From Octopus sinensis (lineage: Eukaryota), in the NCBI RefSeq assembly GCF_006345805.1, contig NW_021833939.1:1-58319 (forward strand): a stretch of DNA of 58,319 bases, written 5' to 3'. Shown in pieces: positions 1-52,030 of this stretch. Positions within the stretch are counted from its first letter, which is position 1, and each line of letters starts with the position of its first letter. A program made the position numbers and the translations under genes. The notes under the pieces were generated by a model. It searched no databases. It saw only the letters and a program-made list of their open reading frames with translations, and had not been told where the DNA came from.

Positions 1-189
1 GTAGTTCATTGTATGTTTATGTGTAATAGATACGCAAATTGAGAGTGCTCACTGATAATCTCCATCCACCGGACTACTCCCACTGCACCACAAACAATAC
101 CAATCCTAACGCTGAGGCTAATACTAAATATAACGCCCGGTTAATTTCAGGTAATTATAACCCAAAAAACTCCACTTAGTACCCCCTAG

Positions 190-560
190 AAGACTATGTA
201 ACTGTAAACTCCTCTCCCTTGCAAAACAAATGCCTCACGAGAAATATGGTACATAAGTATATGGCCACTACGGAAGATTCCAAGAATGCATATATCACCT
301 CGAGCAGCACTACCTTCAAAGCCAGAATTAGTAACCATTATTCTGGCTTTAAATCTCAAGTGTAAACTAATACTATATTTATATCTAGTCTCATTCATTA
401 CCTAAAACATAATTCAGTTGTATACAGTTTAAAGTGGACTTTTATTACTCACGCCAACAAATGCGATCTCTGCATCGCAGAAGTCTTATCTGTTATGCAA
501 TGCAGCAACTGTTTTAATGAACGAAGCTACTTTATTCTTAATTGCCAACACAAATTATGT
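190..560 (+). mobile_element. Degenerate Penelope-like element GIY-YIG endonuclease region
   Basis: Cross-frame translation NKCLTRNMVHKYMAT...AYITSSSTTFKARISNH...KCDLCIAE...NCQHK matches the PLE pattern C..KCL...VY...YIG.T...FK.R..NH...C.LC..E...C.H. Confidence 0.7.
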
Positions 561-2072
561 AATACATATGTGTGTGTGTATATGTATGTATGTACATGTA
601 TATATATATATGTGTGGTGTGTGTGTGTGTGTGCTCCCTTCTTCTGGCCCTCATTACACCCCAAACAAAGCTTTTTAAAATACAAATTTTAAAATACGCC
701 CCCCAATGAAGCCAAGGTTCAATTTGGTTAAATACCTATTTGTGTACATGCGCCGCTCGCTTACTTCTATCCTATCCTATATGTATATACCACCTTACAC
801 AATTACATGAGACACCACAAAATGTGTGATTATTATACTACATAACATGAAGAATTCAGTTGCATATAATTGATATTTATTCATAAAACTTCAATCCCTC
901 CTATACACAGAAAATATCTTACACAGCGAAAAGCACCCAGCAACTGGATAACAGACGTCCAGACTGCACCCATCCCACTTTCACCATCCCCACAAAAAAT
1001 CAGCATCTCACCACCGTCTACTTATATATGATCAACCACATCAACCACTATAAAGCGTTGTATTTGACTAAGATATCTGTCCCAGAGACACAGCATCTGT
1101 CTCATCAAAATTTGCAATATCGTGTGGGAGTATCGGTTAGTTTCGGTTTAGAAAAATACTGTCTGGTACGAGTGTTAAGAAGTGACGCAATTCATCACCT
1201 TCGACAATGTTCAACCCTCAGAAATCAACACCACACATGTCTCAACGACGGAATCTATTTCAACGAATTGATGCATAGATGCTACATCCATGTTACCCAT
1301 ACAGTAGATACTGAGGCCACGAGTGTAGTTGACTTCACAGATCCTGCTAAACAGGTCCTCGGTGCTATCATATGCATTCACTGACAGTTCTATCGAAAGG
1401 CACAACATCTGTGAAATAAAATATAACAGGGCGAATGGGTGTGTCCATAATATAGTCAGTATAGGAAGGTTTGTGGTCTTTCCGGACGCCATACACTGGT
1501 GAAATTTCTTTTTTTAATTCTTTAAAGTGTTTCAGCTTTAAAGTTGCGGTCATGCTGAGGCACTACCATTACAAAATTGTTAACGGTCGCACTCTCACAT
1601 CGAACACATATGAGTATTCACCATCTTTTCCCCTCCTCATTGTAAAATATAGTCACGACACTCAGATTTCTGACATTTCATTGCATGATACCAATATAGT
1701 TTAACAGGCTACCTACAAACTACAAGATTTATTGTATTGCTGCGTACTAGAAACCGTTTGTGAGAAAGCATGGTAGCTTTTCTTTTTTCATACGCTTATT
1801 TAAAATCTACTTTAGTCCTACTTCAGTGCCGGTATTGAGATCTAGATCTTTATACGATTAACTTGAAATATATGGATGTATTCATAAAAGGTACAAATAT
1901 GTTTCGACTTATATTTATTAAATTCCACTTAAATCTCTGAAACCTAAGTATACAAACCCACAGCCCAGCCTCAAACTAATTGCAATGAAACTAGGGTCAG
2001 TGGGCAGGCCACCGTTGGTGAGACGAGAATTTTTGACAACGAGAAATAAATGTTCAAATAAAGTTAATATTC

Positions 2073-2111
<39 letters not shown>

Positions 2112-2112
<1 letters not shown>

Positions 2113-2564
2113 GTACTCTTACTCTTTTACTTGTTTCAGTCAATTGGCTGCGGCCATGCTGGAGCACCGCCTTTAATCGAGCAACTCGACCCCGGGACTT
2201 ATTCTTTTGTAAGCACAGTACTTATTCTATCGGTCTCTTTTGCCGAACCGCTAAGGCAACGGGGACATAAACACGCCACCATCGGTTGTCAAGCAATGCT
2301 AGGGGCACAAACACAGACACGCAAACACACACACGATATATAATATATATATATATATATATGTATATATATGCGTGTCTGTGTTGAGCTATATATACAT
2401 ATATACGACGGGCTTCTCTCAGTTTCCGTCTACCAAATCAACTTACAGGCTTTGGTCGGCCCGAGGCTATAGTAGAAGACACTTGCCCAAGGTACCGCGC
2501 AGTAGGGCTGAACCCGGAACCATGTGGTTGGTAAACAGGCTACTTACCACACAACCACTCCTAT
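2112..2564 (-). mobile_element. tRNA-derived SINE (octopus-type)
   Basis: Minus-strand head with A-box-like tggttgtgtggt and B-box-like ggttcagccc, then a body and a central microsatellite. Multiple copies occur in the window. Confidence 0.85.
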
Positions 2565-2585
2565 ATCTATTTATGTATATATATG

Positions 2586-2616
<31 letters not shown>

Positions 2617-2701
2617 GTATATTTGCATACATGCATGTATATACACATACATACATATAAATACCATACATATTATATATATATATACATATATATATGT
2701 G

Positions 2702-2746
<45 letters not shown>

Positions 2747-4177
2747 TATAAGAAAAGGAGAAAAATATTGTGGATACTTATTGCATTTGTATCACAATAA
2801 AAACATAGCAAAATGTTTAATGCAAATAAAATTTTAATGAACAAACATACACATAAAATAAGCAGAAAAAGTGCTACACATGTTTCAAGCTGTTCACTAT
2901 GAAAACAATGCTTCGGATCCGCAGGGTTCGAACCATGTTAATAGTTGTAAATGTCAAAAATAACAAAGTGACCAGATATCTTCAGGGTTGTCATGTGCAA
3001 AATGCTAATGCTTACTTATTTTTTCACAGGAATTCCAGTTGGTAAAAAACTTACTAGATAAGATGGATTAGGACCACTTATTCATATATATTAAGTATCT
3101 ACGTAATGTAAACATTAGTTTGTTAAAAATAAGTAAGAGGGAACGCCGAGGGAGTAATGGGGAAGGTATTAGCTAATCAAATCTTTCAAAACAGTTATTA
3201 AGGATTTGAAAAATAGACGGTTATGTGTTTTGAGGGACATTATGCAATCATTTAAGAGAATATATAGCGGTTAGGAGTTGTGAGGGACGTTATGTAATTA
3301 GTTTAAGATATTGTGAAGACGTTAAAAAAAGATTGAATTAAAGAGAAGAGATAAGAGATAGGGAGAGATAAGAAAAAATTTTAAAAAGTAAGAATACAGA
3401 GAGAAATAAATTTATTGGGGAAAAGAATAACGAATTAAAAAATTTAGCTAATTGAAAGAAGTTATAAAAAACAATGAGTGATAAGGGATAAAGTATATGT
3501 GCAGATTTTAATATTTTAAAGTTATGGCTAAGAAAGATTATGCTATATTGTATACTTAGGTAATTCTAAAGTATGAGTTCAATTAAAGGTTCACTTGTAA
3601 AGAGGCTTATATCTTCACTGATTATGACCAATTAATAGTGGAGGATATACAAGCAAAATGAAATTTAAAGATAAGGCTCTATCGTTCGATTATGAAGAAA
3701 CTTTTTCGTACTTTTAATCTCTATAAAACAAGCACGACATTTAGATTACAGAGGCTACAAACATAGAAATAGACAAACCGAGCCTCAACAGAAAGGGGGG
3801 AAAAGAGGATAAAACAAGAACCATATACAGTGTAATCGCAGAGAAAACAAACATGCACACGTGGTGTGATAAAATATAAGAAGCAGAGATAAATAACTAA
3901 ACAAAAAACTATATAAAGGGCACAGATACAAACAATACAGTAAGCAAACCTACATACACAAACAAACACACAGTAAACGCCATGTAAATGGCGGGCTTTT
4001 TCGAATTGCATTTCGGTAACAATGTGCTTATTCGGAATAAAAATTCAGTATTGAATATACCGGTTAAATTTATAATTTAAAATAGTATAAAATCTTCATA
4101 AGAATTTATCAAGTAGTTAGCGTGAAAAACCTCATAAGAGAAAAAATTCCACCATTTTTTCACTTAAATATATTTAT

Positions 4178-4560
4178 TTGTGACTATACAAACTGTAATT
4201 ACCGACGTAAGTGTGTCGTTGTGAATTTTAACACTACAACATCGGAAATACCTTTTAAGGAAACCCATGCAAGTTGTTGTGCTTTGAGGTGTAATAATTA
4301 CTGATAATTACTAATATCAAACTACTCTCCCTTTGAAACTGTCCCCTTTAAGCACAAATTATTGTTTCTGTGTATATGAGTTAAATTTAAAGAAGCATAT
4401 TCCACATCTTATCTGCATAGCTATGACGATGTAATTAGAAACATTCCTAAATTTATTTCCAAGAACTTTCTTAGGGTGTTTTCTCTCTTGGTATTTGCAT
4501 AACTAACTGGAAACAATTCTATAATTAAAGAAAGTTCAGTCTTTAAAATTAATGTATTCT
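4178..4560 (+). pseudogene. 5'-truncated paralogue of the sushi gene (last 41 codons + 3'UTR)
   Basis: Encodes CDYTNCNYRRKCVVVNFNTTTSEIPFKETHASCCALRCNNY*, aligning to 15723-15849. The UTR aligns to 15850-16107. No upstream coding sequence is present. Confidence 0.9.
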
Positions 4561-4864
4561 TTGATTTTGCTTCTATTAACGTTTCCTTTTCCATTACGCA
4601 CATTTTTTTACACATTCTATTATCTCGACAAGTGTTTTTTCGGAGACATTCTGAAACTAAGAACTATTTAGTAAGTAGTTCACAACGTGTTCATGTGTAT
4701 AGATGCACAAATTGACAGTGCTCACTGATAATCCTCCCCCCTCGGACTGCTTCCACTGCACTACAAAACAATACCAACCCTAACGCTGAGGCTAATACTA
4801 AATATTACTCCTGGTTAAAATCAGATAATCATAACCCCACAAACCCCACTTTATATCCTCTAGA

Positions 4865-5265
4865 AGTCATTGCAGCTGTAAATGCTCCATCTCCTGTTCC
4901 TTATAAATCAAATGCCTCACAAGAAATGCAGTACAAATGTATGTGGTCACCACGGATGATTCCAAGTAAGTATATATCAGAACTAGTACCACCACCTTCA
5001 AGGCCAGAATTAGTAACTATTTTCTGGCTTTAAATTTCAAGCGACAACTAATACTACCTCTTTATCTAGGCTCATTCATACTTAAAAATTAATGCAGTTG
5101 TATACAGTTTAATATGATCCTTGTTACTCATGCCAAACCGTAAACGGTTATAGCAACAAAAATGCGATCTCTGCATCGCAGAAGTCTTATCTGTTATGCA
5201 ATGCAACAACTGTTTCAATGAACGAAGCTACTTTATCCTGAATGGCCGACACAAATTATGTAATA
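4865..5265 (+). mobile_element. Older paralogue of the same PLE GIY-YIG relic
   Basis: CSCKCSISC...KCLTRN...VYIRTSTTTFKARISNY...TTSLSRLIH...KCDLCIAE...GRHK, with stops and frameshifts. Confidence 0.7.
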
Positions 5266-5491
5266 CCTTCTGAAGTTACAAATAATTCTACCTTCCCCTA
5301 TAATTCCCTACCAATCCTCCTACATCAGCGTCACTTGAATTTCTTCAAAGTATTTATAACATATACTTTTTAAAGCTATTTTCATACATTTCCTTAACAT
5401 TGTTAGATCTTTATAGCAAGGTGAAATATAAAGATTAATAAAAAAGAGAACAAAATTTTAGAGAGCACAATAGATTGTTAGACTCCAACAA

Positions 5492-5552
<61 letters not shown>

Positions 5553-5590
5553 CTAGCTTAAAGCCCGCCCTATCGGGCGGCTTTTGAGTT
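5553..5590 (-). mobile_element. Helitron-type 3' terminus
   Basis: Minus strand has a GC hairpin (gccgccc-gata-gggcgggc), then tttaag, CTAG and T. The 5' end was not identified. Confidence 0.55.
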
Positions 5591-5775
5591 TCCTGCATTG
5601 AGTACATATTAAATTGTTTTAGACTTAACCAATATTTTTCAAGCAATGAACAATTTTCATCAAAACAATGATATAATTTGTCGATTTGTAACTTATTGCA
5701 ATGCTGCACGATAAACAACATTTTTTGTCCTCCCACTCAGGCGTCAGTACAATTTTTTTCTGTCTAACCTCTTTT

Positions 5776-5838
<63 letters not shown>

Positions 5839-6287
5839 TTCTCTCCATCTCTCTCTCTCGCTTTCTGTTGGTTGTTTTCAGCCATCACCATCACCAGTAC
5901 CACCACCATCGCCACCACAACTGCCACACACACCATTCAGATTTCTGACGCCAGCTCCATCAATACCTTCGACTTCGCCGTCTTCCCTTCCACCACCATC
6001 ACCACTGTCTTTTACATTGCTTACTATCACTGTCATCCCTGAACTGCGACCACCATCATCACTGTTACCTCCACCTCTATCACAACTACAGCTCATACTA
6101 TTATTATCAGCCTATTGCCATCACAACCATCAATCTACTACCGTCTGTATGCCTACTAATACTCTCACCTCATCACGCGGAATAGTAGAAATGTCACTGA
6201 ATAGTGAAAGAGGGGCTCAAAGTGTGACACACTGACACACAGAAATTCGCATTGGCATTTATTATTATTATTATTATTGTATTGTTG

Positions 6288-6326
<39 letters not shown>

Positions 6327-6392
6327 TATTATTATTATTATTATATGTATATATATATTATATGTACATATATATATATATATTATATTATA

Positions 6393-6440
<48 letters not shown>

Positions 6441-7434
6441 ATAATTGCCACAGCACATGAGCTGAAATTGAAATTCAAAAAATATATATATATATATCTA
6501 TATATATATATATATATATATTATAATATATATATATAGTTAATCGAAAACATGAAAACATAAAGAGAACAACACCAACACGCGAGGACGTGGAACAAAT
6601 CTAGTATTATTGGACGCTCAGGAAGGAAGGTATATGTATATATAATATATATATATAAATTGTAAAAGGATGCGTGGCGTTCGATCATATAATAATATCA
6701 ATAATATATAAATATATGCATATATACATACATATATGTACTGCTTACATATATATATATATATGTATATATACATGCATATATGGGCACAGGACATCAA
6801 AAAACGTTGAACACAATTAGAAACGAAAACATGAAAACAAAAACATAGAAACGAACTTTTTTTCGAACAACGAAAAAAACAGAGAAACGAGACATGCAAC
6901 ATAAAGAATATTCCCCTTCTTCAGTTGTCCCTGTTCCATCTACTCCACGTTCGAAGGCAAGGACAATACGTGACTTCGTTGAAACAGTCCTTCCTGCAAA
7001 GCAAATTAAATAAAATTTGGGATTTTTTGCGGGGGGGTGAATGTGGTAACAAGAACAGGACTGTGAGAACAAAACAGCAAAAACAAACGTTAAGCCAAGA
7101 CGATAGAAAAATTATTATGAACGCTAGGAAGACGAGCTTATGAAGGAGGCAGTATAAGCACGTTTTGTCTTTACGAAGGTAGTGGGCAAAATGATAGATT
7201 CTCTTTCGTCACGTGTTAGCGACGAGAGAGTCGAGGAGGAGGAGTGAGAGAGAGGGGACGGTGAAGAGGAGAGGAGAAGAATAAAGAAGGGTGGGAGAGA
7301 AAACCAGAAAGGATGAAGAACAAGAGAGGGAGAAAGATAGACAGAGAAGAGATAGTAAAGATAGAAGAGTGCGCATCGTAATTATTAAGATGAAACTTCC
7401 TTGGAAAAGGATGCGTGGCGTTCGATATATATAT

Positions 7435-7494
<60 letters not shown>

Positions 7495-7599
7495 TGTGTG
7501 TGTGTGTGTGTGTACATGTGCGCGAGCGTGTGTTGTGTGTGTGTGTGTGTGTATGTATGTATATATAAGTTTATGAATTTATGCTGCAAATCGGCAATG

Positions 7600-8050
7600 T
7601 CGGTCAACTAGAATCTAGCACTATGAAGAGCATCCAGGAAGTAGCTAACTCCATTCACCAGAGTAATAAAGTAACAATAGACTACCCTAGCAAGCGCTCG
7701 AACTACCGGTTTCAAACTGCCAACTAAAAATAGTAAGGTCCAGATCCTTCATTCCCGTTATGCCAAACCCATGCCCTCTAAACACCTTGTCCACAAGAGC
7801 GCAGCTATTGCAGACAACGCCAAGTTCAATATCCTAATAGCAGACTTGGTGAGAGTGATGAGGAATGGGCCTTGCACGTGCAACCCAATAGAATTGGAAA
7901 GACACATACAGCACCTCATCCACCGTATGCAATTCCTGGTTACAACCAAAGGGAAAGGATTAGCGTGTACAAAAGAGCCAGGGCTAAGTACAATGCCAAC
8001 ATGCGATACATTTTGTCTGTGTTCATGTATGACGAAAGTAAATTATTGAT
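7600..8050 (+). mobile_element. Penelope-like RT C-terminal/thumb fragment
   Basis: IQEVANSIH..KVTIDYPS...ILHSRYAKPMPSKHLVHKSAAIADNAKFNILIADLVRVMRN...HIQHLIHRMQ resembles the PLE RT C-terminal region. Confidence 0.65.
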
Positions 8051-8389
8051 TTCATCCCAAGATGTCCTATACCGTTCCATATTTCAAACTTTTCGTGAAC
8101 TGAACTCCGTAAGTATTATAACTTTATCTATAAAAGTAAATTTACAATTAAATTTTTTCTTTTTCTTTTCTTTTTTCTTTTCTTTTTGTGGTAGCAACAA
8201 TCTATATCATTGCTGATAAATAGTCACTAATGAACACCGTTGGAAGATTAGAGGATAGAGACATGTGCATAAACATAGGGCTATCGTTTAAAACAGAGGA
8301 AACCTCGGTAACATATAATAATGTTGACCCAAGAGAGTGGGCAAAAAACTCATAGGTTGACTATAAATGAGCTATGCTATAACTGTGAA

Positions 8390-9518
8390 ATCTTGCATGC
8401 ATTAATTTCAGTTATTCTTATTAAAATCTGCATTATTTCTTTACACGTAAATTGAAATCTGACAGATCAAAGAACACTGTTATCAAGTACCAGCAGAAAA
8501 CGTGTTTAGTCACTCAGGTACATTCATGCTGCCATGCTTGCTATATTAAGGGATGACGCTCCATCTTCATCAACGGTGCAAAAGCAGATAGGTGAATTTA
8601 GGCGAGGATGGAGGGTTTTAAAGATCACCCAAGGTCTTTACGTCTTGCAACTACTACCACCGAAGAAAACGTTGGTCATGTTCACCACATGGTGAGGGAT
8701 GGCATATGATTGACTATCAATCAAATAACCAATTCTAAAAGCGTATACCGTGGGAGTTATTCTACACAATGAATGTGGCATGACGAAGGTATTGCTCGGT
8801 GGACTCCATGTCTTTTGACACCTGATCAAAAGCGCACCAGGCTGTCGACATCACAGAAAAATCTGTCACTCTTTCAGACAGATTCAGCTGGTTTCCTTGA
8901 ACGTTTTCTTAGCCAGGATGAATGTTGGTTTCATCACTTTGAGCCAGGGACAAAGAAACAATCCATGCTGTGGAAACACCCATCCTCATCTTCTCTAAAG
9001 TGGACCACGGTCGTTTCATCTCAGGGAAGGTGACGACCTCAGTCTTTTGGGTTGCAAAAGGCATTGTGTTCGTTGACTATCTTCAAAAAAGCCACGTCAT
9101 CAGTGGAGAGAAATATGCCAACTTGCTGAAGCAGTTGCAAAAGGCAATCAAGACTAAATGCCGATGAAAACTGATGAAAGGGGTTTTGTTTTATCAGAGC
9201 AATGCCCCAGCACACAAGTCCTTGGTTTCAATGGCTGCTGTGAATAGAGTGGCTTTGAACTGGTTGATCACCAGTGGTTTGATACCACTTGACTATCATG
9301 TCCCCAACATCATAAAAAATACTTGGCTGGAAACAGTATCGCTGTGACGATGACGTCACATCTGCTCTTGATAATTTTTTGACCCACAGGATGAAAGCTT
9401 CTTCAATAATGAGATTCAAACACTACAACACCGATGAAAGAAATGAAATAAACCTCATTTAGTCAAATTCCATGAGAGTATCTTGATTAGCCTGGGGACT
9501 TTTCAACCGACCTTCATA
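8390..9518 (+). mobile_element. Degenerate mariner (Tc1/mariner) transposon
   Basis: WTPCLLTPDQK (WVPxxL-like), QDECWFHHFEP.TKKQS..W, VFW...GIVFVDYL, SNAPAH. A right-TIR-like end acttttcaaccgaccttcata is followed by TA. Stops and frameshifts present. Confidence 0.9.
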
Positions 9519-9585
9519 TATGTTTTGTTAGATCTAAGCTCTATTGAAATTCTTATGTTGGCGGACTTGTGCCATTCCTGTCATG

Positions 9586-9743
9586 GTAGGTGCAGGTGTG
9601 ACCGAGTGGTAAGATGTTTGCTTTCCAACCATATAGCTGTAGGCTCAGTTCCACTGCATGGCACGTTAGGCAAGTGTCTTCTACTGTAGGCCTAGGCCGG
9701 CCAGGGTCTTGTAACTGGATTTCGTAGAAACCCGTGATGTGTG

Positions 9744-9774
<31 letters not shown>

Positions 9775-9995
9775 ATGAGAGAGAGCGAGAGAGAGTGCGT
9801 GCGCGTCGCGTAAGTGTGTGTGTATGTCTTCGTCTTTGTAACAGTTCCCCACTCAATTTGACAGCTGATGTTCGCTTGTTTACTTCTCCGAAACTTCGCT
9901 GTTCTGCGATGTGTAGGCCGATAGGATAAGCGCCAGGCTTGAAAATATAGGTACTGGAGTCGACGCAGTCTAATGACTGAAACAAGCGACAAAGT
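9586..9995 (+). mobile_element. tRNA-derived SINE
   Basis: Head gtgaccgagtggtaag...ggcaagtgtcttctact, central (GT)/(GA) repeats and tail tgactgaaacaag, shared with other copies. Confidence 0.8.
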
Positions 9996-10310
9996 TTCAT
10001 AAGAATGTGTGCCTTTTTTTTTTAGTATACCCTTTAGTGGCTGTATTTTATTGATCTTTGATTTTCCATAGAATCAAACATTAATTAGAAAAACATCCTT
10101 CGATATTGTCATTTAATTCAACGAAACATTTAAGGCAACGAAACAAACATGCACCTTTATAACAGCCAACGAACTTCTGTGCACCAGCAATCTAGTAAAT
10201 TGCTGAGCTGTCGTAACACCGTCATTTGTAAACATTCGACTTGATTATATTTATAGCCATAATTCTTATTGTTAATAAAGTTGTACTCTAATGTTAATAA
10301 AGTTGTACTC

Positions 10311-10530
10311 TATGATGGGCGTGCTGAAAAGTTCCCGGCTTTAAGGATATTGTGAAAGCCTGGTTGATGGCCCAGTATTCCGAGTTCTTTTACAGGGTTT
10401 AAAAAACCTGAAAGGTGACTGCAATAAGTGTGCGAATCTGAGAGGGGAATATGTTGAATAAAATCATAATTAACTGATCCTTCTGCATTTTCTTTTACTC
10501 CAAATGAACCACAAGGCGTTTGAGATTTCT
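10311..10530 (+). mobile_element. Short non-autonomous mariner derivative
   Basis: Mariner-like terminus tatgatgggcgtgctgaaaagttccc, then mariner-like 3' sequence aagtgtg...ggggaatatgttgaataaa. Confidence 0.55.
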
Positions 10531-11772
10531 TCCCAATAAAGCTTGATGCTTTACAATTGACGGGCATTTTCACGAGATTTAATGAAATTCGTTTCTAGCT
10601 CCAAGGAGCCAATACAACATCTTATGAGTTGTATAAAATGTAATGTCATTGTTCATCGAAAATCTTTATATTTTATGCCTAATATTGGGAAGAAGGAATT
10701 CCATCAGTTCGCAAAATTGTGATCCATTAAACAAGGTGTAATTCCATAAGAGATTGAAAAGTTCAATAATCGTTTATGAGATACAGGAAACCGATTTAGC
10801 GATATTTTGAACTTGAAGATGTGACTGGAAAAGGTATCTTTTTAATGTAAATGTTGTCGAGGTTGATGCTTATACCCGGAAAAAAAGTTTAGAATTTAAA
10901 TACGAAAAAAAGCCAATGGAACTTCGTTGTGGTGGATACCGAAATTTATGGAGATTTTTTTTTTTTAAATACCCGTTTAATATCCAAATACGTGGAAATT
11001 TATATCCATTTTACAGCTGCCTTTTTCTACCACGTATTTTGTTGAACCAGCTTTTAGGACAACAAATTATTTTGTCACTAAATTGGAAAAAACTGACCCA
11101 CAAATCACTGAAACATGATTCTTTTGTATTTTCCTTATGAAAATAGAAACAGTTAGTTTCAGCCTCAAAAATTACAATTAAAGGTAATTTCTTTAAATTT
11201 TATAATTTATGCAGAGTATGTGAAGTACTTTCAAATAATTTTGCTGTTTTATGTACTGTGTAACGCTTGTCAGTTTTTTCTTGTTTTCAATTGAAATATT
11301 AATGAGTGGGAGGAAAACATTGCCTACACACGAACATTACAAAAGTGTGCACTGTATTAAAACTTGACTTGTAATGATGCAAGCGATCTATCTATCTTTC
11401 TATCTACATATGCATGCATTTGGCATACATACATACATACATGCATGCATCATACATACATACATACATACATACATACATACATACATACATACATACA
11501 TACATACATACATACTACATACACACATATACAGCATTCTATGCAGTACTGTATATATATATATATATATATATATAGATATATATATATATAATAATAA
11601 ATATTAGGGAATATATCCAAATTTACAGGGAAAAAAAATCAGATTAGGATTAAATCCAATTTTATAGTAAAATATTATAAAATATTATTTGAGACAAAAC
11701 CACTATTTTGCAAAACAAACAAGGAAAGACTTAATCAATACATAAAATTTAATAAATAGTAAAAAAAAACCG

Positions 11773-11815
11773 CCACTACAATCGTTTCTTGTCTTGATCG
11801 ACAATCTTCAGGTGG
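11773..11815 (-). ncRNA. Minimal type I hammerhead ribozyme (inverted copy)
   Basis: Exact reverse complement of 13770-13812. Confidence 0.85.
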
Positions 11816-13769
11816 ACTTCCAATCTAAAAAATCAAAATTTTAAAATATAAAAATAATACTTTTAAATAATTAAAGTATAAATGAAAAAATATAAGTATA
11901 TAATCCATATATAACCTATATATAATCCATATCGAAAATATAGATTAATTACCACGAATTCCCTAAAAAAAAAAAAAAAAAAAACCATGATAAAACAAAA
12001 CTCTTAAAACATATAACGATAAAATCTCCCTTTGCTAAACTCTATAACAAACCTATAAAGTAAACCCCCTAACCTAAACATTCACACACAAATACACACA
12101 CGTAACCACAGACTCACGACTTATACACATACCTATACAAACTTATAAACCTCAATATACAACAAAACCCACTCCCTCCCCACACAGACAAATTAACACA
12201 TACATCCCAAAACCTAAATAACAAACCCATATACACATTCACACAACAAAACACACACACGCACACAAAACACTCACACACAAAATACATATACTCCCTC
12301 ACATATACGCCTATACATACTCACTAAACTCGACATATACAACAATACTTACACACACCCACAAAAACATTATATACATTTATGAGCTTTAACTCACCTT
12401 AGCATCTCTAACAAACAACTTGCAGAAACCCAATCCCATTCTCTATACCTATCTCACTACTACACTATTCCATTCACATTCCGAGCAACGCTAGTCCACC
12501 ACCCGGTTATTCACGTGGCAAAACGAACACCACTCAAAAATTATGAATGAAACAATGTAAAAAAATAACCAACACCTAAAATAGACAAAATACCACAAAT
12601 TACCTAAAAAAAACCATGATAAACCAAAACTCATAAAAGCATATAACGATAAAATCTCCCTTTGCTAAACCCTATAACAAACTTATATAGCAATCCCCCT
12701 AACCTAAACATTCACACACAAAAAACCCACACATAAACCACAGACCCAAAACTTATACACAAACCTATACTAACTTATAAACCTCAATATACACCAAAAA
12801 CCACTCCCTCCCCACACAGACAAATTAACACATACATCCCAAATCCTAAATAACAAACCCAAATACACATTCACACACAAACACACACACACACAAAACA
12901 CACATACACAGATACATATGCTCCCTCACATACGCATATACATACTCACTAAAACTCGATATATACAACAATATTTACACCCACACTCATACAGATAAAT
13001 AAATTAATTATACAATTAAAAACTCACAACCAATCTCATATACATAAACACTCTTATGAAAACAACAATAAATACATCGTAATTAACCAGAATATCAAAA
13101 ATAACATTATGACATAAGGATAAATCAAATACATACTTACAATTCAGTTACAAATTATGAAGTGAAATTAGATTTTTAGCCGTTAAAAAACCAAACAAAA
13201 TTACGTTACCATGGAAATAACTAATGTAAAAAAAGAATACGCGCCATAGAAAGTAAACGTCATTCATAGTATGAATGGAGAAATATAATAAATGGAACTA
13301 AAAACTATTTCCACGTAGCAAACCAACATACTTAAAAAAATTTATTATGAATGGATTCTTTAAAAACTATCATGAAAAATCAATTATATACATTTATGAG
13401 CTTTAGCTCACCCTAGCAACTCTAACAAACAATTTACAGTAACCCATACTCAATGCCTACCTCATTACCACCCTAATCCATTCACAATTCCAAACAACAC
13501 TATACACCACACGGTTACAATTCCCAACTCTACCCATTCACAATTTCAACGACGTTCCCTACAACAACTCTACATATAAGCCTCAACATATACACCGGAG
13601 ATACACTTACACATCCGTGCGGATGGGTGAGAGTATACATTAAGTGTAGTGATGGGGCTCCCATTTCTAAACACATTTGTACCTGTGTGGTAGTCTCCAT
13701 GTGTATATTCACGCACGGGTATAAATATTATTTTTATATTTTAAAATTTTGATTTTTTAGATTGGAAGT

Positions 13770-13812
13770 CCACCTGAAGATTGTCGATCAAGACAAGAAA
13801 CGATTGTAGTGG
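13770..13812 (+). ncRNA. Minimal type I hammerhead ribozyme
   Basis: CCAC-CUGAAGA-UUGUC(GAUCAA)GACAA-GAAA-C(GAUU)G-UA-GUGG: complete core, 5-bp stem II, 4-bp stem I and a GUA cleavage triplet. Confidence 0.85.
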
Positions 13813-14267
13813 CGTTTTTTTTGACTATTTATTAAATTTTATGTATTGATTAAGTCTTTCCTTGTTTGTTTTGCAAAATAGTGGTTTTGTCTCAAATAAT
13901 ATTTTATATATATATATATATTATATATATATATATATATATAATATATATATATAATACTATATATATATATTATATATTATATATATTATATATAAAA
14001 ATATATATATATGTATATGAAATTATACAAAGTATCAACAATAAAATTTATTTAATATAATGTTATCGTTTTTCATAGTTTGTAATTTGTGCTTGTAATG
14101 TACTCAGTTTGATATTTAGTCTGGACATAATATTCTGTACTCTCTAAAAGAGGTGTATATGGGAGTATCCTTATTCATTCAATTAAAACGGTGTCAAATT
14201 CAAAAAAGTAAATATAAGTAAGTTTTTCTCAGTACTACTTATACGCTCCTGGGTGTGTTATCTCGAG

Positions 14268-14274
14268 TATAAAA
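14268..14274 (+). promoter_or_regulatory. Candidate TATA box (TATAAAA) of the sushi gene
   Basis: TATAAAA lies ~93 nt upstream of the ATG at 14367. Position only; no expression data. Confidence 0.45.
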
Positions 14275-14366
14275 GGTGCATTGAACAGTCACTGAAGGCA
14301 ACGAAATAACAAGTGTGAACACAGCGACCTTATCTTCACGAACAAGTTAGAAACAAAATTGAGAGA

Positions 14367-15849
14367 ATGATATCCAGAAAATTTTATTTCCTTTTCTTAA
14401 TTATATTAACAGTGAAGAGTGAAAATAATACATTTGGAAATGTTATGAAAAAGATCGTATCTGAATACAGTAATTCGACTTCAACCGAAAACAACTATGC
14501 TCCGTGGTTTTTTGAACAAATTATAAATATCCTAAACTGTGGTCCTTTATCGACATTAAAGAACAGTCGGATACATTATATTGTGAAATGGGAAGAGGCA
14601 AAAATACATCTGAAACAAAAGTGCAACCGCTATTTTGAAGCAAGCGTAGAGAATACAGCCGATATTATTTGTTCGAATGGTAAATGGATGTATGAAGATA
14701 AAAAATGTAAGTTAATAACTTGCCCGATTTTTCATAAACCTGCACGCAGTTTCATGATAAATGTTGCATACTCATATAACTCTGTTATTCGTTTTTCCTG
14801 CCTGTCTGGTTGTTTTTTACGAGGAAGCAATTCAATACGTTGTCAAGAAAATAAACAGTGGTCGTCTCTCCCACCAATCTGTGAAATTGTTAAATGTCTC
14901 CCACCGAACCCACCCAAACATGGCAATGTAAACAATACAAATGAAGTTAAAGTTAACGAAACAATTCATTTCAGTTGCTTAAAGCCATATAGTCTGAAAG
15001 GTGAATCTGTATTAACTTGTCTTTCAGACGGCAGCTGGAACTTTCCGGCACCTGTTTGTACTTTGAATTGCTTTGTACCTGAAATTGCTGGTAGAGTGGT
15101 GACTATTTCTGAAGGTACAATATTAAAACCAAGAACCTTAATCAACGAAGGAGGAAAAGTCATATATTCTTGCAAACGATCCTTCATTCCTATCGCGTTT
15201 GGTGTCGTTCAATGCTTGTCAAGTAAATGGTATCCAGATATACAGTGCAGAAACGCGTGTAAAATGAGAAACGAAATGGGTTAAATTTTATTTTGTCACG
15301 TAATTTTTCGGTTATTGAATATAGTTGTCCGTTGGAGAAACATTGTTGGGAGATTCAAAAAGAACCTGTTTAGAAAATGGAACATGGAGTGGAAAACTTC
15401 CACAGTGTGCAAAGAACTGTCAATTGTTGCGAAAATTTGGCATATATAGCTACCGAAATTCGGAAACTTTGAAATATCTTCCGTATGGCAGTACAGTTCC
15501 AGAAAATACGAACATTACTTATTCTTGTGAATTCCCAAATTCGAAGAAATTGAACGAGAGCGTAATGTGCCATAAAGGTATACTGACCCCAACACCAGGC
15601 TGTGCATTTAAAAATATTCGACTTGATCGTAACAACAATCTTCTTTACAAGAATATTTCATCAGATTCCCATGTTTCCGGAACAAACATTGATTGCAAAT
15701 TTTTTGGTTACCGCCAGTACACTTGTGACTATAGAAACTGTAATTACCGACATGAGTGTGTCGTTGTGAATTTTAACACTACAACATCGGAAATACCTTT
15801 TAAGGAAACCCATGCAAGTTGTTGTACTTTGAGGTGTAATAATTACTGA
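14367..15849 (+). CDS. Secreted multi-sushi (CCP/SCR) protein: signal peptide + 6 CCP modules + 7-Cys C-terminal tail, ~494 aa if two 1-nt deletions are restored; no introns evident
   Basis: ORF 14367-15284 begins with a hydrophobic signal (MISRKFYFLFLIILTVKS) and has four C..C..C..W..C modules, e.g. CLPPNPPKHG...FSCLKPYSLKGESVLTCLSDGSWNFPAPVC. A third frame over 15263-15328 reads NEKRNGLNFILSRNFSVIEYSC and links to ORF 15325-15849 (SVGETLLGDSKRTCLENGTWSGKLPQC...). Adding one A at ~15261-15264 and one T at ~15328 gives one continuous frame. Many N-x-S/T sequons. Confidence 0.88.
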
Positions 15850-16068
15850 TAATTACTAATATCAAACTACTCTCCCTTTGAAACTGTCCCCTTTAAGCAC
15901 AAATTATTGTTTCTGTGTATATGAGTTAAATTTAAAGAAGCATATTCCACATCTTATCTGCATAGCTATGACGATGTAATTAGAAACATTCCTAAATTTA
16001 TTTCCAAGAACTTTCTTAGGGTGTTTTCTCTCTTGGTATTTGCATAACTAACTGGAAACAATTCTATA

Positions 16069-16074
16069 ATTAAA
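16069..16074 (+). promoter_or_regulatory. Candidate poly(A) signal (ATTAAA) of the sushi gene
   Basis: ATTAAA lies 220 nt after the stop and is conserved in the paralogue (4524-4529). Near-identity between the paralogues ends ~33 nt downstream. Confidence 0.4.
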
Positions 16075-16419
16075 AGAAAGTTCAGTCTTTAAAATTAAAT
16101 GTATTCTGCATAATTTTGTTTTATTAACGTTTCATTTTCCATTGTACACATTTCGTTACACATTCTGTTATCTCGGAAACTTTTTTTTTTTTTGAGGCAT
16201 TCCTGCTGAAACTAGGAACTTACATTGTAAGTAGTTCATTGTATGTTTATGTGTAATAGATACGCAAATTGAGAGTGCTCACTGATAACCTCCATCCACC
16301 GGACTACTCCCACTGCACCACAAACAATACCAATCCTAACGCTGAGGCTAATACTAAATATAACGCCCGGTTAATTTCAGGTAATTATAACCCAAAAACT
16401 CCACTTAGTACCCCCTAGA

Positions 16420-16790
16420 AGACTATGTAACTGTAAACTCCTCTCCCTTGCAAAACAATGCCTCACGAGAAATATGGTACATAAATATATGGCCACTACG
16501 GAAGATTCCAAGAATGCATATATCACCTCGAGCAGCACTACCTTCAAAGCCAGAATTAGTAACCATTATTCTGGCTTTAAATCTCAAGTGTAAACTAATA
16601 CTATATTTATATCTAGTCTCATTCATTACCTAAAACATAATTCAGTTGTATACAGTTTAAAGTGGACTTTTATTACTCACGCCAACAAATGCGATCTCTG
16701 CATCACAGAAGTCTTATCTGTTATGCAATGCAGCAACTGTTTTAATGAACGAAGCTACTTTATTCTTAATTGCCAACACAAATTATGTAA
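16420..16790 (+). mobile_element. PLE GIY-YIG relic (duplicate of 190-560)
   Basis: Near-identical to 190-560. Confidence 0.7.
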
Positions 16791-16826
16791 TACATATGTG
16801 TGTGTGTATATGTATGTATGTACATG

Positions 16827-16868
<42 letters not shown>

Positions 16869-18136
16869 CCCTTCTTCTGGCCCTCATTACACCCCAAACA
16901 AAGCTTTTTAAAATACAAATTTTAAAATACGCTCCCCAATGAAGCCAAGGTTCAATTTGGTTAAATACCTATTTGTGTACATGCGCCGCTCGCTTACTTC
17001 TATCCTATCCTATATGTATATACCACCTTACACAATTACATGAGACACCACAAAATGTGTGATTATTATACTACATAACATGAAGAATTCAGTTGCATAT
17101 AATTGATATTTATTCATAAACCTTCAATCCCTCCTATACACAGAAAATATCTTACACAGCGAAAAGCACCCAGCAACTGGATAACAGACGTCCAGACTGC
17201 ACCCATCCCACTTTCACCATCCCCACAAAAAATCAGCATCTCACCACCGTCTACTTATATATGATCAACCACATCAACCACTATAAAGCGTTGTATTTGA
17301 CTAAGATATCTGTCCCAGAGACACAGCATCTGTCTCATCAAAATTTGCAATATCGTGTGGGAGTATCAGTTAGTTTCGGTTTAGTTGACTTCACAGATCC
17401 TGCTAAACAGGTCCTCGGTGCTATCATATGCATTCACTGACAGTTCTATCGAAAGGCACAAGATCTGTGAAATAAAATATAACAGGGCGAATGGGTGTGT
17501 CCATAATATAGTCAGTATAGGAAGGTCTTGTGGTCTTTCCGGACGCCATACACTGGTGAAATTTCTTTTTTTTAATTCTTTAAAGTGTTTCAGCTTTAAA
17601 GTTGCGGTCATGCTGAGGCACTACCATTTACAAAATTGTTAACGGTCGCACTCTCACATCGAACACATATGAGTATTCACCATCTTTTTCCCTCTCCTCA
17701 TTGTAAAATATAGTCACGACACTCAGATTTCTGACATTTCATTGCATGATACCAATATAGTTTAACAGGCTACCTACAAACTACAAGATTTATTGTATTG
17801 CTGCGTACTAGAAACCGTTTGTGAGAAAGCATGTAGCTTTTCTTTTTTCATACGCTTATTTAAAATCTACTTTAGTCCTACTTCAGTGCCGGTATTGAGA
17901 TTCTAGATCTTTATACGATTAACTTGAAATATATGGATGTATTCATAAAAGGTACAAATATGTTTCGACTTATATTTATTAAATTCCACTTAAATCTCTG
18001 AAACCTAAGTATACAAACCCACAGCCCAGCCTCAAACTAATTGCAATGAAACTAGGGTCAGTGGGCAGGCCACCGTTGGTGAGACGAGAATTTTTGACAA
18101 CGAGAAATAAATGTTCAAATAAAGTTAATATTCATG

Positions 18137-18172
<36 letters not shown>

Positions 18173-18198
18173 ATATTATATATATATATATATATATA

Positions 18199-18425
18199 TC
18201 TGTACTCTTTACTCTTTTACTTGTTTCAGTCATTTGGCTGCGGCCATGCTGGAGCACCGCCTTTAATCGAGCAACTCGACCCCGGGACTTATTCTTTTGT
18301 AAGCCCAGTACTTATTCTATCGGTCTCTTTTGCCGAACCGCTAAGCAACGGGGACATAAACACGCCACCATCGGTTGTCAAGCAATGCTAGGGGCACAAA
18401 CACAGACACGCAAACACACACACGC

Positions 18426-18458
<33 letters not shown>

Positions 18459-18656
18459 ATATATGCGTGTCTGTGTTTGCGTATATATACATATATACGA
18501 CGGGCTTCTCTCAGTTTCCGTCTACCAAATCAACTTACAAGGCTTTGGTCGGCCCGAGGCTATAGTAGAAGACACTTGCCCAAGGTACCGCGCAGTAGGG
18601 CTGAACCCGGAACCATGTGGTTGGTAAACAGGCTACTTACCACACAACCACTCCTA
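18199..18656 (-). mobile_element. tRNA-derived SINE (duplicate of 2112-2564)
   Basis: Near-identical to 2112-2564. Confidence 0.85.
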
Positions 18657-18747
18657 TATCTATTTATATATATATGTATATATATATATATACATATATA
18701 TATATGTATATTTGCATACATGCATGTATATACACATACATACATAT

Positions 18748-18778
<31 letters not shown>

Positions 18779-18788
18779 CATATATATA

Positions 18789-18830
<42 letters not shown>

Positions 18831-20089
18831 TATATATATATATATATATTACTATAAGAAAAAGGAGAAAAATATTGTGGATACTTATTGCATTTGTATC
18901 ACAATAAAAACATAGCAAAATGTTTAATGCAAATAAAATTTTAATGAACAAACATACACATAAATAAGCAGAAAAAGTGCTACACAGTTTCAAGCTGTTC
19001 ACTATGAAAACAATGCTTCGGATCCGCAGGGTTCGAACCATGTTAATAGTTGTAAATGTCAAAAATAACAAAGTGACCAGATATCTTCAGGGTTGTCATG
19101 TGCAAAATGCTAATGCTTACTTATTTTTTCACAGGAATTCCAGTTGGTAAAAAACTTACTAGATAAGATGGATTAGGACCACTTATTCATATATATTAAG
19201 TATCTACGTAATGTAAACATTAGTTTGTTAAAAATAAGTAAGAGGGAACGCCGAGGGAGTAATGGGGAAGGTATTAGCTAATCAAATCTTTCAAAACAGT
19301 TATTAAGGATTTGAAAAATAGACGGTTATGTGTTTTGAGGGACATTATGCAATCATTTAAGAGAATATATAGACGGTTAGGAGTTGTGAGGGACGTTATG
19401 TAATTAGTTTAAGATATTGTGAAGACGTTAAATAAAAAGATTGAATTAAAGAGAAGAGATAAGAGATAGGGAGAGATAAGAAAAAATTTTAAAAAGTAAG
19501 AATACAGAGAGAAATAAATTTATTGGGGAAAAGAATAACAAATTAAAAAATTTAGCTAATTGAAAGAAGTTATAAAAAACAATGAGTGATAAGGGATAAA
19601 GTATATGTGCAGATTTTAATATTTTAAAGTTATGGCTAAGAAAGATTATGCTATATTGTATACTTAGGTAATTCTAAAGTATGAGTTCAATTAAAGGTTC
19701 ACTTGTAAAGAGGCTTATATATTCACTGATTATGACCAATTAATAGTGGAGGATATACAAGCAAAATGAAATTTAAAGATAAGGCTCTATCGTTCGATTA
19801 TGAAGAAACTTTTTCGTTACTTTTAATCTCTATAAAACAAGCACGACATTTAGATTACAGAGGCTACAAACATAGAAATAGACAAACCGAGCCTCAACAG
19901 AAAGGGGGGAAAAGAGGATAAAACAAGAACCATATACAGTGTAATACGCAGAGAAAACAAACATGCACACGCGTGTGATAAAATATAAGAAGCAGAGATA
20001 AATAAGTAAACAAAAAACTATATAAAGGGCACAGATACAAACAATACAGTAAGCAAACCTACATACACAAACAAACACACAGTAACGCC

Positions 20090-20478
20090 ATGTAAATGGC
20101 GGGCTTTTTCGAATTGCATTTCGGTAACAATGTGCTTATTCGGAATAAAAATTCAGTATTGAATATACTCCGGTTAAATTTATAATTTAAAAATAGGATA
20201 AAATCTTCATAAGAATTTATCAAGTAGTTAGCGTGAAAAACCTCATAAGAGAAAAAAATCCACCATTTTTTCACTTAAATATATTTATTTATATTATATA
20301 GAGAGCATTATTTTTTCTCTTATGAGGTTTTTCACGCTAACTACTTGATAAATTCTTATGAAGATTTTATCCTATTTTTAAATTATAAATTTAACCAGAG
20401 TATATTCAATACTGAATTTTTATTCCGAATAAGCACGTCGTTACGGAAATGCAATTCGAAAAAGCCCGCCATTTACAT
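20090..20478. repeat. Long inverted repeat (arms 20090-20269 / 20310-20478, ~40 nt spacer)
   Basis: atgtaaatggcgggc...cataagagaaaaaa versus ttttttctcttatg...gcccgccatttacat. A further partial copy lies at ~20780-20880. Confidence 0.9.

Positions 20479-23615: not shown

Positions 23616-23655
<40 letters not shown>

Positions 23656-45331: not shown

Positions 45332-45335
<4 letters not shown>
44942..45335 (-). mobile_element. 5'-truncated R4/Dong family B insertion
   Basis: CFLVDVSIPADDNV..KE.EKLSKYKDL...IPIIVGALG. Same 3' terminus as at 35066. Confidence 0.88.
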
Positions 45336-45361
<26 letters not shown>

Positions 45362-45362
<1 letters not shown>

Positions 45363-48300: not shown

Positions 48301-49335
48301 TTGTTTTCTTTGTTTTTTCGGGGGCATACAGCTGGTTTCAATTGCCCTAGCAGAAGCGTAAATAATTTCATTTAACTCAGTAAAATCAGGTTTTAATTCT
48401 TGTATTATTTCATTTGTTACATAGTTGCCAATTTTGATTTGTTTTTTATTTTGGTTTGTATTTGAGAGTTTATGAAGTGGTTCTCTATCATTCATACTTG
48501 TATGTCTTACAACTTCAAGCGTATTCAGGATTTTCTGCCTCATTTCTGCCATAGACTCTCTGTGTTCTTCAGCAAATGCGAGATCTTCAGTTACTGTTGT
48601 TTTATCATTTTTCTGGCTATCTTTAACAAGTTCAATAGAATTTCTTGTATCTTCAGGCCTTTGCGTGCTTTGGTCAGATGGCAGTCTTTCAATTAAGCCT
48701 TGTGGCGGGCTATTCTGTTCATCTGATTCTTCATTTCCTTTGTGTCTTATATTTATGTCATTTTCCGTTGCGTCCTTGATCGCGCTTATTTCACTGTGAG
48801 TCCGTTATTTCTAAGGATATCCCTCTTCACATTTGCCAATTTGTTCTCGCCCAAATAGGGTCTACTGTCTTGATTCGGTGTTCTCCATATACTGTAAGAG
48901 TTTGCAGTGTGTCTCTCTTGAGATGGCCTACCTAATGCATAGTAATAAGCGTATATTACTTCTTTATACTCTTCTCGGGTCCATTTGTTCCGCTTACATT
49001 TTTCTTTCTGTGGTGGTTGTGGTGGTGAACTTGGAGGGCTCGAGTTGGGGAATTTCCCGTTCAAGTGACCATCCATGTCCGTATTCAGAGAAGAGTTTGT
49101 GCCAGTTGATGACTTTTCGATCCCAGGCTTGCTCTTCCCTGGGGGACGCGCTTCCAGATTAACCATAGGACAAGCGATTTGGTATACTGATTTAGTTTTC
49201 CTTTTAGTTTCCAAAAACATTTTGGTGCTACGATAATGTTATCATTTTTGAGCTCTGAGTGGCTCGCGGGGAGACGGCCATCATTGCCGTTACAATTATA
49301 ATCGTACCATTATAGCAGCCGTAGCCGGCTTATTA
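45362..49335 (-). mobile_element. R4/Dong-type LINE, family A copy 2 (near full length, few frameshifts)
   Basis: Long ORFs 48786-49220, 47923-48552, 46704-47963 (RT, FYMDDLKLY) and 45591-46691 (CRFC..ETVDHLISGC, KPDIVV). Highly similar to 23656-27590. Confidence 0.95.
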
Positions 49336-50557: not shown

Positions 50558-50589
<32 letters not shown>

Positions 50590-50814
50590 ACTTAATAAAT
50601 TTTAAATAAATTATTTTTAAATAAACATTTCGTGATAAAATGTTTCTGTGAAGAATATGGTTTTTAAAATCCACTCGAAAATTTCTCAATGTACAGCGTT
50701 GTTTAGGGATCAGCACTCCATTACGACTCATCACATTCTCATTAGAGTTCTTTACATAAAGAAGTTAACATGAATAAGTAATATTCGTGTAATGTGTGTC
50801 AGTGTGAGTAAGTG

Positions 50815-51590: not shown

Positions 51591-51616
51591 AAAAAAAAAA
51601 TATGCATATATACATA

Positions 51617-52025: not shown

Positions 52026-52030
52026 GTATA

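Follow-up and report, generated by a model that had tools for sequence, protein, structure and literature searches.

A six-CCP gene of an octopod-restricted family, interrupted by two one-base frame breaks that are probably assembly errors

Results

A single-exon six-CCP gene in three reading frames

The window, by which we mean the whole stretch of DNA analysed, is the entire 58,319-bp unplaced scaffold VCDQ01000542.1 of Octopus sinensis assembly GCA_006345805.1. PMC11202624 cites the paper on this assembly under a title that names PacBio reads and Hi-C as the basis of the assembly. The DNA of the window is AT-rich and carries many LINE reverse-transcriptase remnants and TA/CA microsatellites. 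On its forward strand, one exon (14367-15849) encodes a putative signal peptide, six CCP (sushi) modules and an 81-residue tail (Table 1).

Three reading frames share this exon. Frame 0 (14367-15263) continues to a premature TAA at 15282-15284, after CRNACKMRNEMG, as seen in a three-frame translation of 15198-15420. Frame 2 (15266-15328) reads NEKRNGLNFILSRNFSVIEYSCP, and frame 1 (15331-15849) reads VGETLLGDSKRTC and continues to a TGA at 15847-15849. None of the three segments contains an internal stop codon, and the terminus is the stop codon used by relatives. We aligned the gene with four intact O. sinensis paralogous genes, namely P0002, P0004, the tandem neighbour of P0004, and P0164. 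This alignment and the three-frame translation bear out the proposal of the initial annotation that the three successive frames are one gene. For codon analyses the two broken codons were masked (NNN or X), which gives a reading of 494 codons.

The 305-residue ORF that ends at the premature stop scores 79.4 bits against the Pfam Sushi profile (PF00084; gathering cut-off 20.7), and the intact relatives score 94-108 bits. The ORF matches intact proteins of 486-494 residues at E = 1e-196, a similarity far above chance. No Pfam domain other than Sushi was detected in the window ORF or in the intact relatives. Each of the six modules of the window gene has four cysteines, and the CCP tryptophan, placed between Cys3 and Cys4, is present in modules 1-5; module 6 lacks it throughout the family. 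The masked 494-codon reading contains 10 N-x-S/T sequons, and none of its hydrophobic stretches is strong enough for a transmembrane segment. The description from which this work started, an intronless and secreted six-CCP protein with many sequons and no transmembrane segment, agrees with the signal-like N-terminus, the six four-cysteine modules and the Sushi score. An extra cysteine that had been pointed out in module 2 (SGCFLRG) is indeed present, but it is not a family feature: it results from Y149C, a change private to the window copy at a position where every relative has tyrosine.

Downstream of the gene, identity between the window and the P0002 copy drops past ~16080. The frequency of ATTAAA poly(A) hexamers in this downstream region is not above chance for AT-rich DNA. 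NCBI and UniRef already contain the 305-residue truncated ORF of the window as a protein, and the RefSeq pipeline retained the truncated model.

Table 1. Features of the six-CCP gene and of related copies in the window. Positions are those of the window; residue numbers follow the masked reading.
Feature	Position	Strand	Remarks
TATA box GTATAAAAGG	14267..14276	+	~90 bp 5' of ATG; unchanged across five aligned paralogous 5' flanks
ATG and putative signal peptide MISRKFYFLFLIILTVKS	14367..14420	+	Basic n-region, 11-residue hydrophobic core, V-K-S before likely cleavage site
39-residue N-terminal region with two sequons and conserved PWFF.Q motif	14421..14537	+	W47 and Q51 conserved in family alignment
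CCP module 1 (C58-C114), private P62S	14538..14708	+	Four Cys and Trp; P62S derived in window copy
CCP module 2 (C119-C172), private Y149C (codon 14811-14813)	14721..14882	+	Pfam Sushi; Tyr in all relatives
CCP module 3 (C177-C231)	14895..15059	+	Best Pfam Sushi stretch: residues 177-231 cover profile 1-56 of 56; model pLDDT > 80
CCP module 4 (C235-C294), divergent, long first loop	15069..15248	+	Four Cys and Trp; poor model, pLDDT 30-43
CCP module 5 (C298-C348), across three frames	15258..15408	+	C-terminal half matches Pfam Sushi positions 36-56
First frame break	15264..15265	+	Two bases left of Ile-300 codon; 1 fewer than each intact paralog
Premature TAA, frame 0	15282..15284	+	Closes 305-residue ORF, deposited as protein
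Second frame break	15329..15330	+	Two bases left of Pro-322 codon; 1 fewer than each intact paralog
CCP module 6 (C352-C413)	15418..15603	+	Without usual Trp, as in entire family
Cys-rich C-terminal tail, 81 residues, and TGA	15604..15849	+	Family has 8 Cys; window copy 7 (C438S, codon 15676-15678)
Probable 3' UTR	15850..16100	+	ATTAAA at 16069 and 16094; three copies same apart from private one-base deletions
Truncated sister copy (last ~42 codons and stop, P0002-like)	4178..4304	+	3' flank to 5417; 97.45% identical to L001 11359-12609
Distal 3'-flank copy	1..4179	+	Matches 16231-20290 at 98.8% and 96.8% identity
Old decayed family fragment (CCP6 region)	50588..50803	-	tblastn 45-59% identity; in-frame stop, Cys lost (YSC*LLYV, VMSRNG)

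An octopod-only family

A search with the 305-residue ORF matched 11 proteins, and a profile built from nine full-length family members gave 14 matches, 11 of them in the family. Across the protein and profile searches, family members occur in Octopus sinensis, O. bimaculoides and Argonauta hians only; they are 483-495 residues long and have a common architecture. Outside the family, the profile aligns with generic multi-CCP proteins only, one module at a time. That the family profile finds members in Octopus and Argonauta alone supports the lineage-specific expansion suggested at the outset. A profile search of the whole library returned P0008, P0001 and P0010 as the only family members among the best 150 matches; because it was flooded by giant multi-CCP proteins, this search is uninformative on distant relatives.

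The genomic loci of six relatives, Argonauta included, were compared with their proteins. All six span 3 x (residues + 1) bases on the genome and hence have their coding sequence in one exon. None of the five 5' flanks compared, among them that of the distant O. bimaculoides gene P0008, shows any variation in the TATA box, which lies ~90-115 bp upstream of the ATG. Two family genes on O. sinensis chromosome CM016861.1 are 99% identical and 6.5 kb apart, and three members in O. bimaculoides sit on one chromosome; the family genes form tandem arrays. Pairwise dN/dS values within the family (0.32-0.59) indicate purifying selection and suggest that the family is functional but evolving fast.

The locus in the window is a genuine gene that belongs to this uncharacterised, octopod-restricted CCP family, and both its truncated model and an intact twin are already in databases. 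A literature search covering the family accessions, octopus salivary-gland sushi proteins and gene-family expansions found nothing on the family beyond a table of skin-mucus proteins, to which we return below.

An intact twin and a local tandem array

A cluster lookup groups the 305-residue ORF with the 495-residue protein XP_029654565.1 (A0A6P7TXA6, encoded by P0164), annotated as 'complement factor H-like'. This protein is intact and 98% identical to the window copy. Its gene lies on the unplaced scaffold VCDQ01000500.1, where it adjoins the P0002 gene. Over 1,483 bp this gene differs from the window gene by 15 substitutions, apart from the two bases that the window copy lacks. The two copies share gene structure, collinear flanks and the order of signal peptide, six CCPs and Cys-rich tail. 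Unlike the window copy with its two frame breaks, the twin retains an open frame, P62, Y149 and eight tail cysteines. It also has changes of its own (P125H, S154N, E261D, I276V, N492E and a stop-to-Arg change that adds one residue).

Window positions 5412-17202 are collinear with VCDQ01000500.1 at 96.7-98.6% identity, and the final 967 bp of VCDQ01000500.1 correspond to window positions 1-969 at 99.2% identity. Since the scaffolds are collinear and their ends match, we take them to be either adjacent units of a tandem array or two haplotypes. Within the window, positions 1-4179 repeat 16231-20290, which implies a tandem repeat unit of ~16.2 kb; the truncated sister copy breaks off where the duplicated block 1-4179 ends. 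This truncated copy and the old decayed fragment of the CCP6 region lie on the same scaffold, which indicates that real gene death occurs in the array.

The two frame breaks and the indel background

Both breaks are single-base deficits relative to the intact paralogs. The first lies within AAAATTGAG, where the window has a single T and the paralogs have TT; it falls in the Ile-300 codon. The second is a lone A that is absent from TGTCCAGTTGG, in the Pro-322 codon. Neither break is in a homopolymer. The initial annotation had attributed both to homopolymers and had read K-N-E at the first. Both points need correction: the A4 run is full-length, the missing bases are one T of a TT pair and a lone A, and the intact relatives have K-I-E, within C-K-I-E-K-R-N-G. 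A lookup of the 305-residue ORF returned VCDQ01000542.1 as the sole contig, and the frameshift is therefore neither confirmed nor contradicted by an independent contig.

As a measure of background, we counted one-base indels and substitutions between near-identical non-coding copies (Table 2). One-base indels occur at 3.79 per kb between the unplaced scaffolds versus 0.32 per kb in a chromosomal duplicate of similar divergence, a ~12-fold excess (Fisher p = 2.8e-4). The excess is also seen between intra-window duplicates (p = 8e-5). The largest of these has 18 one-base indels, of which 12, like both frameshifts, fall in runs of one or two bases. Over the first ~280 bp of the 3' flank, three copies differ by private one-base deletions alone.

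Table 2. Substitutions and one-base indels between near-identical copies.
Comparison	Length compared	Substitutions	One-base indels
Chromosomal tandem duplicate, same family (L002)	6.2 kb	53	2
Window vs VCDQ01000500.1 (L007 segments)	7.66 kb	85	29
Intra-window duplicates	4.1 kb	43	20
Window 4178-5417 vs L001	1.26 kb	16	12

The gene itself fits this background. Some 2.6 artefact-like deficits are expected per 1,483 bp, and 2 are observed. Between 15048 and 15584, where the window and the P0002 gene are 99.4% identical, the two differ by 3 substitutions and the 2 deletions. A Poisson model gives a value of 0.84 for both deficits being artefacts, even if the copy is free to decay. We place our own estimate below this value, because the indel excess might itself be biological. 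From the ~12-fold excess over the chromosomal duplicate, we judge that both frameshifts are probably assembly errors rather than real deletions. The pattern of indels may reflect residual long-read consensus error in repeats beyond the reach of short-read polishing. The expectation that the gene is intact is thus the more likely reading, for a reason other than homopolymers: the scaffold is rich in one-base indels of the same kind.

It follows that the truncation of the deposited 305-residue protein of this locus is probably an artefact. Given a one-base indel level ~12 times that of the chromosomal duplicate, we recommend distrust of frameshift-based pseudogene calls on the unplaced scaffolds of GCA_006345805.1. 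The density of one-base indels differs between coding sequence (1.3 per kb) and flanks (~3.8 per kb), so the noise may be non-uniform.

Private substitutions in the window copy

The window copy and its twin differ at 12 nonsynonymous and 1 synonymous codons (dN 0.011, dS 0.003); these are small counts, and the skew is the same in the intact twin. We polarised these 13 codon differences with P0002. The changes derived in the window copy are P62S, Y149C, K367E, Y436H, C438S, K464E and possibly one at residue 435, a tally of 6-7 nonsynonymous and 0 synonymous. The twin has acquired 5 nonsynonymous and 1 synonymous changes and remains intact. Three of the window-derived changes, P62S, Y149C and C438S, strike positions that are invariant between Octopus and Argonauta: C438S deletes a conserved tail cysteine, and Y149C adds a cysteine at an invariant tyrosine. 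Substitutions are atypical as long-read consensus errors, and for this reason the window copy is probably evolving without the usual constraint of the family. Alternatively, young copies may be under diversifying selection, since the intact twin has the same nonsynonymous skew.

These substitutions are an argument for the strongest competing explanation, in which both frameshifts are real and the window copy has only very recently become a pseudogene, or is a null allele, in a birth-and-death tandem array, with protein made only from the twin and the other paralogs. A set of derived changes that is entirely nonsynonymous is expected of a copy freed from constraint, and this copy has lost a tail cysteine, gained what would be an unpaired cysteine and lost an invariant proline. 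The 12:1 ratio fits neutrality (p = 0.13) and fits the dN/dS of the family poorly (p = 0.005). Long homopolymers are the classic site of consensus errors, and neither deficit lies in one. The scaffold also carries the truncated sister copy and the decayed fragment, and the deposited protein model terminates at residue 305. Against this explanation stand the indel background, which predicts ~2.6 events per gene length without any biology and which places two-thirds of its one-base indels in runs of one or two bases too (in the largest intra-window duplicate), and the ratio of 3 substitutions to 2 deletions against P0002, which is unnatural. The three segments contain no in-frame stops, and neither the promoter nor the stop codon is damaged. 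In addition, a twin that is intact and yet carries 5 nonsynonymous changes to 1 synonymous suggests that the skew may come from diversifying selection in both copies. We regard a real pseudogene as the less probable outcome, though one to be taken seriously, and continue with assembly error as the preferred account of the two breaks.

Predicted fold and the eight-cysteine tail

The AlphaFold model of the full-length paralog P0004 is usable per domain only (pTM 0.36). CCP2, 3, 5 and 6 and the tail are modelled with confidence, CCP4 and the N-terminus poorly. A helix is predicted at residues 2-16, within the putative signal peptide, and the helices predicted in the 39-residue N-terminal region are of low confidence. 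In this model the confidently predicted CCP modules adopt the beta-sandwich fold expected of their class. Foldseek searches with it match factor H and beta2-glycoprotein I at E = 1e-18 to 1e-16. Taken together, Foldseek and PDB profile matches comprise factor H, CR1/CR2, CD46, DAF and beta2-glycoprotein I, and in the PDB profile search CCP15-20 of factor H align with residues 82-412.

The C-terminal tail has no significant match in Pfam, in the PDB sequence profiles or in Foldseek. When modelled by itself it is predicted to be all-beta, with a pLDDT of 82 in one of five models. Foldseek searches with the tail alone repeatedly return SRCR domains (MARCO, SCARA1/5, CD163 and DMBT1) at non-significant scores (E 0.3-6, TM 0.4-0.55, one of five models confident). 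SRCR domains are small, disulfide-rich and extracellular, as the tail may be. They differ in that the tail is ~20 residues shorter and leaves Pfam SRCR unmatched.

Discussion

The explanation that we favour, with reasonable but far from complete confidence, is that the window holds a young copy of an octopod gene family, broken by assembly error, whose product is a secreted defence binding protein. The locus would be a genuine and very young copy, either a tandem duplicate or an allele, of the XP_029654565.1 gene. Its predicted product is a secreted, N-glycosylated rod of six CCPs that ends in an eight-Cys, probably beta-rich domain without recognisable relatives. The scaffold is unplaced, rich in repeats and built from long reads, and the two frame breaks would be single-base deletion errors left in its consensus; if they are, the gene is intact in the animal. 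A putative role is that of a soluble binding protein in mucosal or humoral defence, possibly as a regulator or adaptor for thioester proteins of the C3/TEP/CD109 type.

The proposed role in defence draws on what CCP arrays do elsewhere and on the presence of the twin in mucus beside abundant thioester proteins. A0A6P7TXA6 is listed in the skin-mucus proteome of Octopus vulgaris with one unique peptide, one spectrum and 3% coverage; TEP1 and CD109 rank near the top of that proteome in abundance (PMC10138644, Table S2). Binding of thioester proteins in the manner of C3b/C4b is a candidate activity, for which the presence of the twin in mucus rich in TEP1 and CD109 is circumstantial; a thioester protein as the ligand of the window-gene product is speculative. 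Among the tissues that the initial annotation had put forward, an immune or skin function is in keeping with the occurrence of the twin in octopus skin mucus, and a venom-gland function finds no support in a protein whose only Pfam domain is Sushi. For mucosal immunity in cephalopods the family makes a sensible candidate, and a candidate only, with its presence in skin mucus as a first hint.

One can envision a broader scenario, which we consider rather improbable in its entirety. Octopods would possess their own family of single-exon, tandemly arrayed, secreted proteins that combine six CCPs with a new eight-Cys domain; young copies would be positively selected (dN exceeds dS between the twins), copy number would vary between haplotypes, and the proteins would act in mucus as partners or regulators of thioester proteins. 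If true, this would amount to a layer of mucosal immunity similar to complement regulators that evolved independently in a mollusc.

Origin of the window copy by retroposition, which had been suggested from its lack of introns, is very unlikely. According to this explanation the gene is a processed retrogene, reverse-transcribed from the mRNA of a CCP gene with introns. Introns are usual between the CCP modules of vertebrate RCA genes and are absent from the coding sequence of the window gene and of all relatives checked; LINE reverse transcriptases are also abundant near the window gene. However, the gene was duplicated together with its promoter, ~460 bp of 5' flank (which includes the invariant TATA box) and 3' flank over several kb, all of which its sister copies share. 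From this joint copying of promoter and flanks we conclude that the window copy was made by DNA duplication, not retroposition. The single-exon state dates back at least to the split between Octopus and Argonauta. The end of homology shows no trace of poly(A) (the run at 16166-16180 is poly-T), and protein searches, whose sensitivity is limited, found no intron-bearing parent gene. At the birth of the family as a whole, retroposition may have played a part.

Least probable of all is a venom or salivary-gland protein akin to the sushi-containing cephalotoxins: SE-cephalotoxin (SE-CTX, the only structurally classified one) and its decapodiform relatives are likewise secreted cephalopod proteins with Sushi modules, and the window-gene product is predicted to be secreted, Cys-rich, fast-evolving and tandemly duplicated, but the cephalotoxins are ~1,050-residue mosaics of Sushi, LDL-A, TSP1 and EGF, whereas the product has 494 residues (versus 1052) with no LDL-A, TSP1 or EGF in Pfam, the sole protein-level report on the family is from skin mucus, and the literature yielded no link between the family and the salivary gland.

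The vertebrate RCA proteins (factor H, CD46, DAF and CR1) and beta2-glycoprotein I provide the closest structural comparison. Like the octopod proteins, they are soluble or cell-surface strings of CCPs joined by linkers of 3-4 residues, and they give the best fold and profile matches; beta2-glycoprotein I also has a specialised domain at its C-terminus. The likeness does not extend to orthology with RCA genes, as no protein beyond Octopus and Argonauta matches the family profile over its full length. The octopod family differs from RCA further in its restricted lineage, its single exon, its 39-residue N-terminal region and its unrelated eight-Cys tail, a domain with no known relatives. Automated names across the family include 'complement factor H-like', 'P-selectin', 'SVEP1' and 'CUB and sushi 3-like', and the 'factor H-like' name of the twin is likewise an automated annotation.

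Scaffold ends and organization of the array

The first 969 bp of the window match the final 967 bp of the unplaced scaffold VCDQ01000500.1 (11868-12834 of L007, the locus from that scaffold) at 99.2% identity, with 4 substitutions and 4 one-base indels. VCDQ01000542.1, the scaffold of the window, and VCDQ01000500.1 could dovetail into one array containing, in order, the P0002 gene, the P0164 gene (the intact twin of the window gene), a truncated copy and the window gene. Alternatively, the two scaffolds may be haplotigs of one array.

Window positions 1-4179 and 16231-20290 constitute a segmental duplication with an offset of 16.2 kb. At its junction, 4178/4179, the distal flank abuts the final ~125 bp of a family coding sequence; this junction is either a real product of unequal exchange or an assembly join. 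Of the two proteins P0001 (376 residues, metaclust) and P0011 (A0A0L8GPB1, O. bimaculoides), P0001 follows a copy truncated after CCP4, crosses a 5' UTR without interruption and enters the beginning of the following copy. Given this read-through, a truncated unit appears to be fused upstream of a full unit in O. bimaculoides, as in the window.

Divergence among copies

Between near-identical segments, one-base indels in the window, L007 and L001 (the locus of the sister gene P0002), all of which are unplaced, are about 12 times as frequent as in L002, a chromosome-placed duplicate in the same assembly. Pseudogene calls based on frameshifts in such unplaced scaffolds are thus unsafe.

Three differences between the window gene and its twin fall inside 10 bases (15668-15677) and change DYYVCG to DSHVSG, a motif absent from the known paralogs. 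Because these substitutions are so tightly clustered, the sequence suggests either that several nucleotides changed in a single event or that a short tract was converted. In the intact sister gene P0002 (XP_036354704.1; L001 10001-11485), two cysteines of the eight conserved in the tail have been lost jointly, one replaced by Tyr and the other by His, and G105D and G222S both affect invariant positions. These changes may reflect co-loss of one disulfide pair or, alternatively, relaxed constraint over the whole unplaced sub-array.

Mobile elements and repeats

Repeats in the window
Feature	Position	Strand	Details
LINE-like element, copy 1	23627-27882	-	RVT_1 and zf-RVT reverse-transcriptase ORFs
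LINE-like element, copy 2 (downstream)	45332-49632	-	RVT_1 and zf-RVT; longer ORFs, 419 and 366 residues
Reverse-transcriptase ORF, other non-LTR element	35064-35813	-	
Reverse-transcriptase ORF, other non-LTR element	39482-41354	+	also matches L001 3153-5000, 68%
Hexamer TATTAT array, 5.9 kb	29166-35068		~990 copies, 89% match
Short interspersed repeat, ~400-600 bp	2089-2691, 18178-18782, 51597-52044		also several sites in L001 and L002

The short interspersed repeat lies near family genes on every O. sinensis locus fetched, at 72-90% identity. The TATTAT array has a G+C content of ~15% and a GC skew of -1. The plus-strand reverse-transcriptase ORF lies in a stretch, 38-42 kb, where G+C is unusually high at 47-55%. 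The two LINE-like copies share 94% identity, with 151 mismatches and 50 gap openings, and are another indel-rich comparison.
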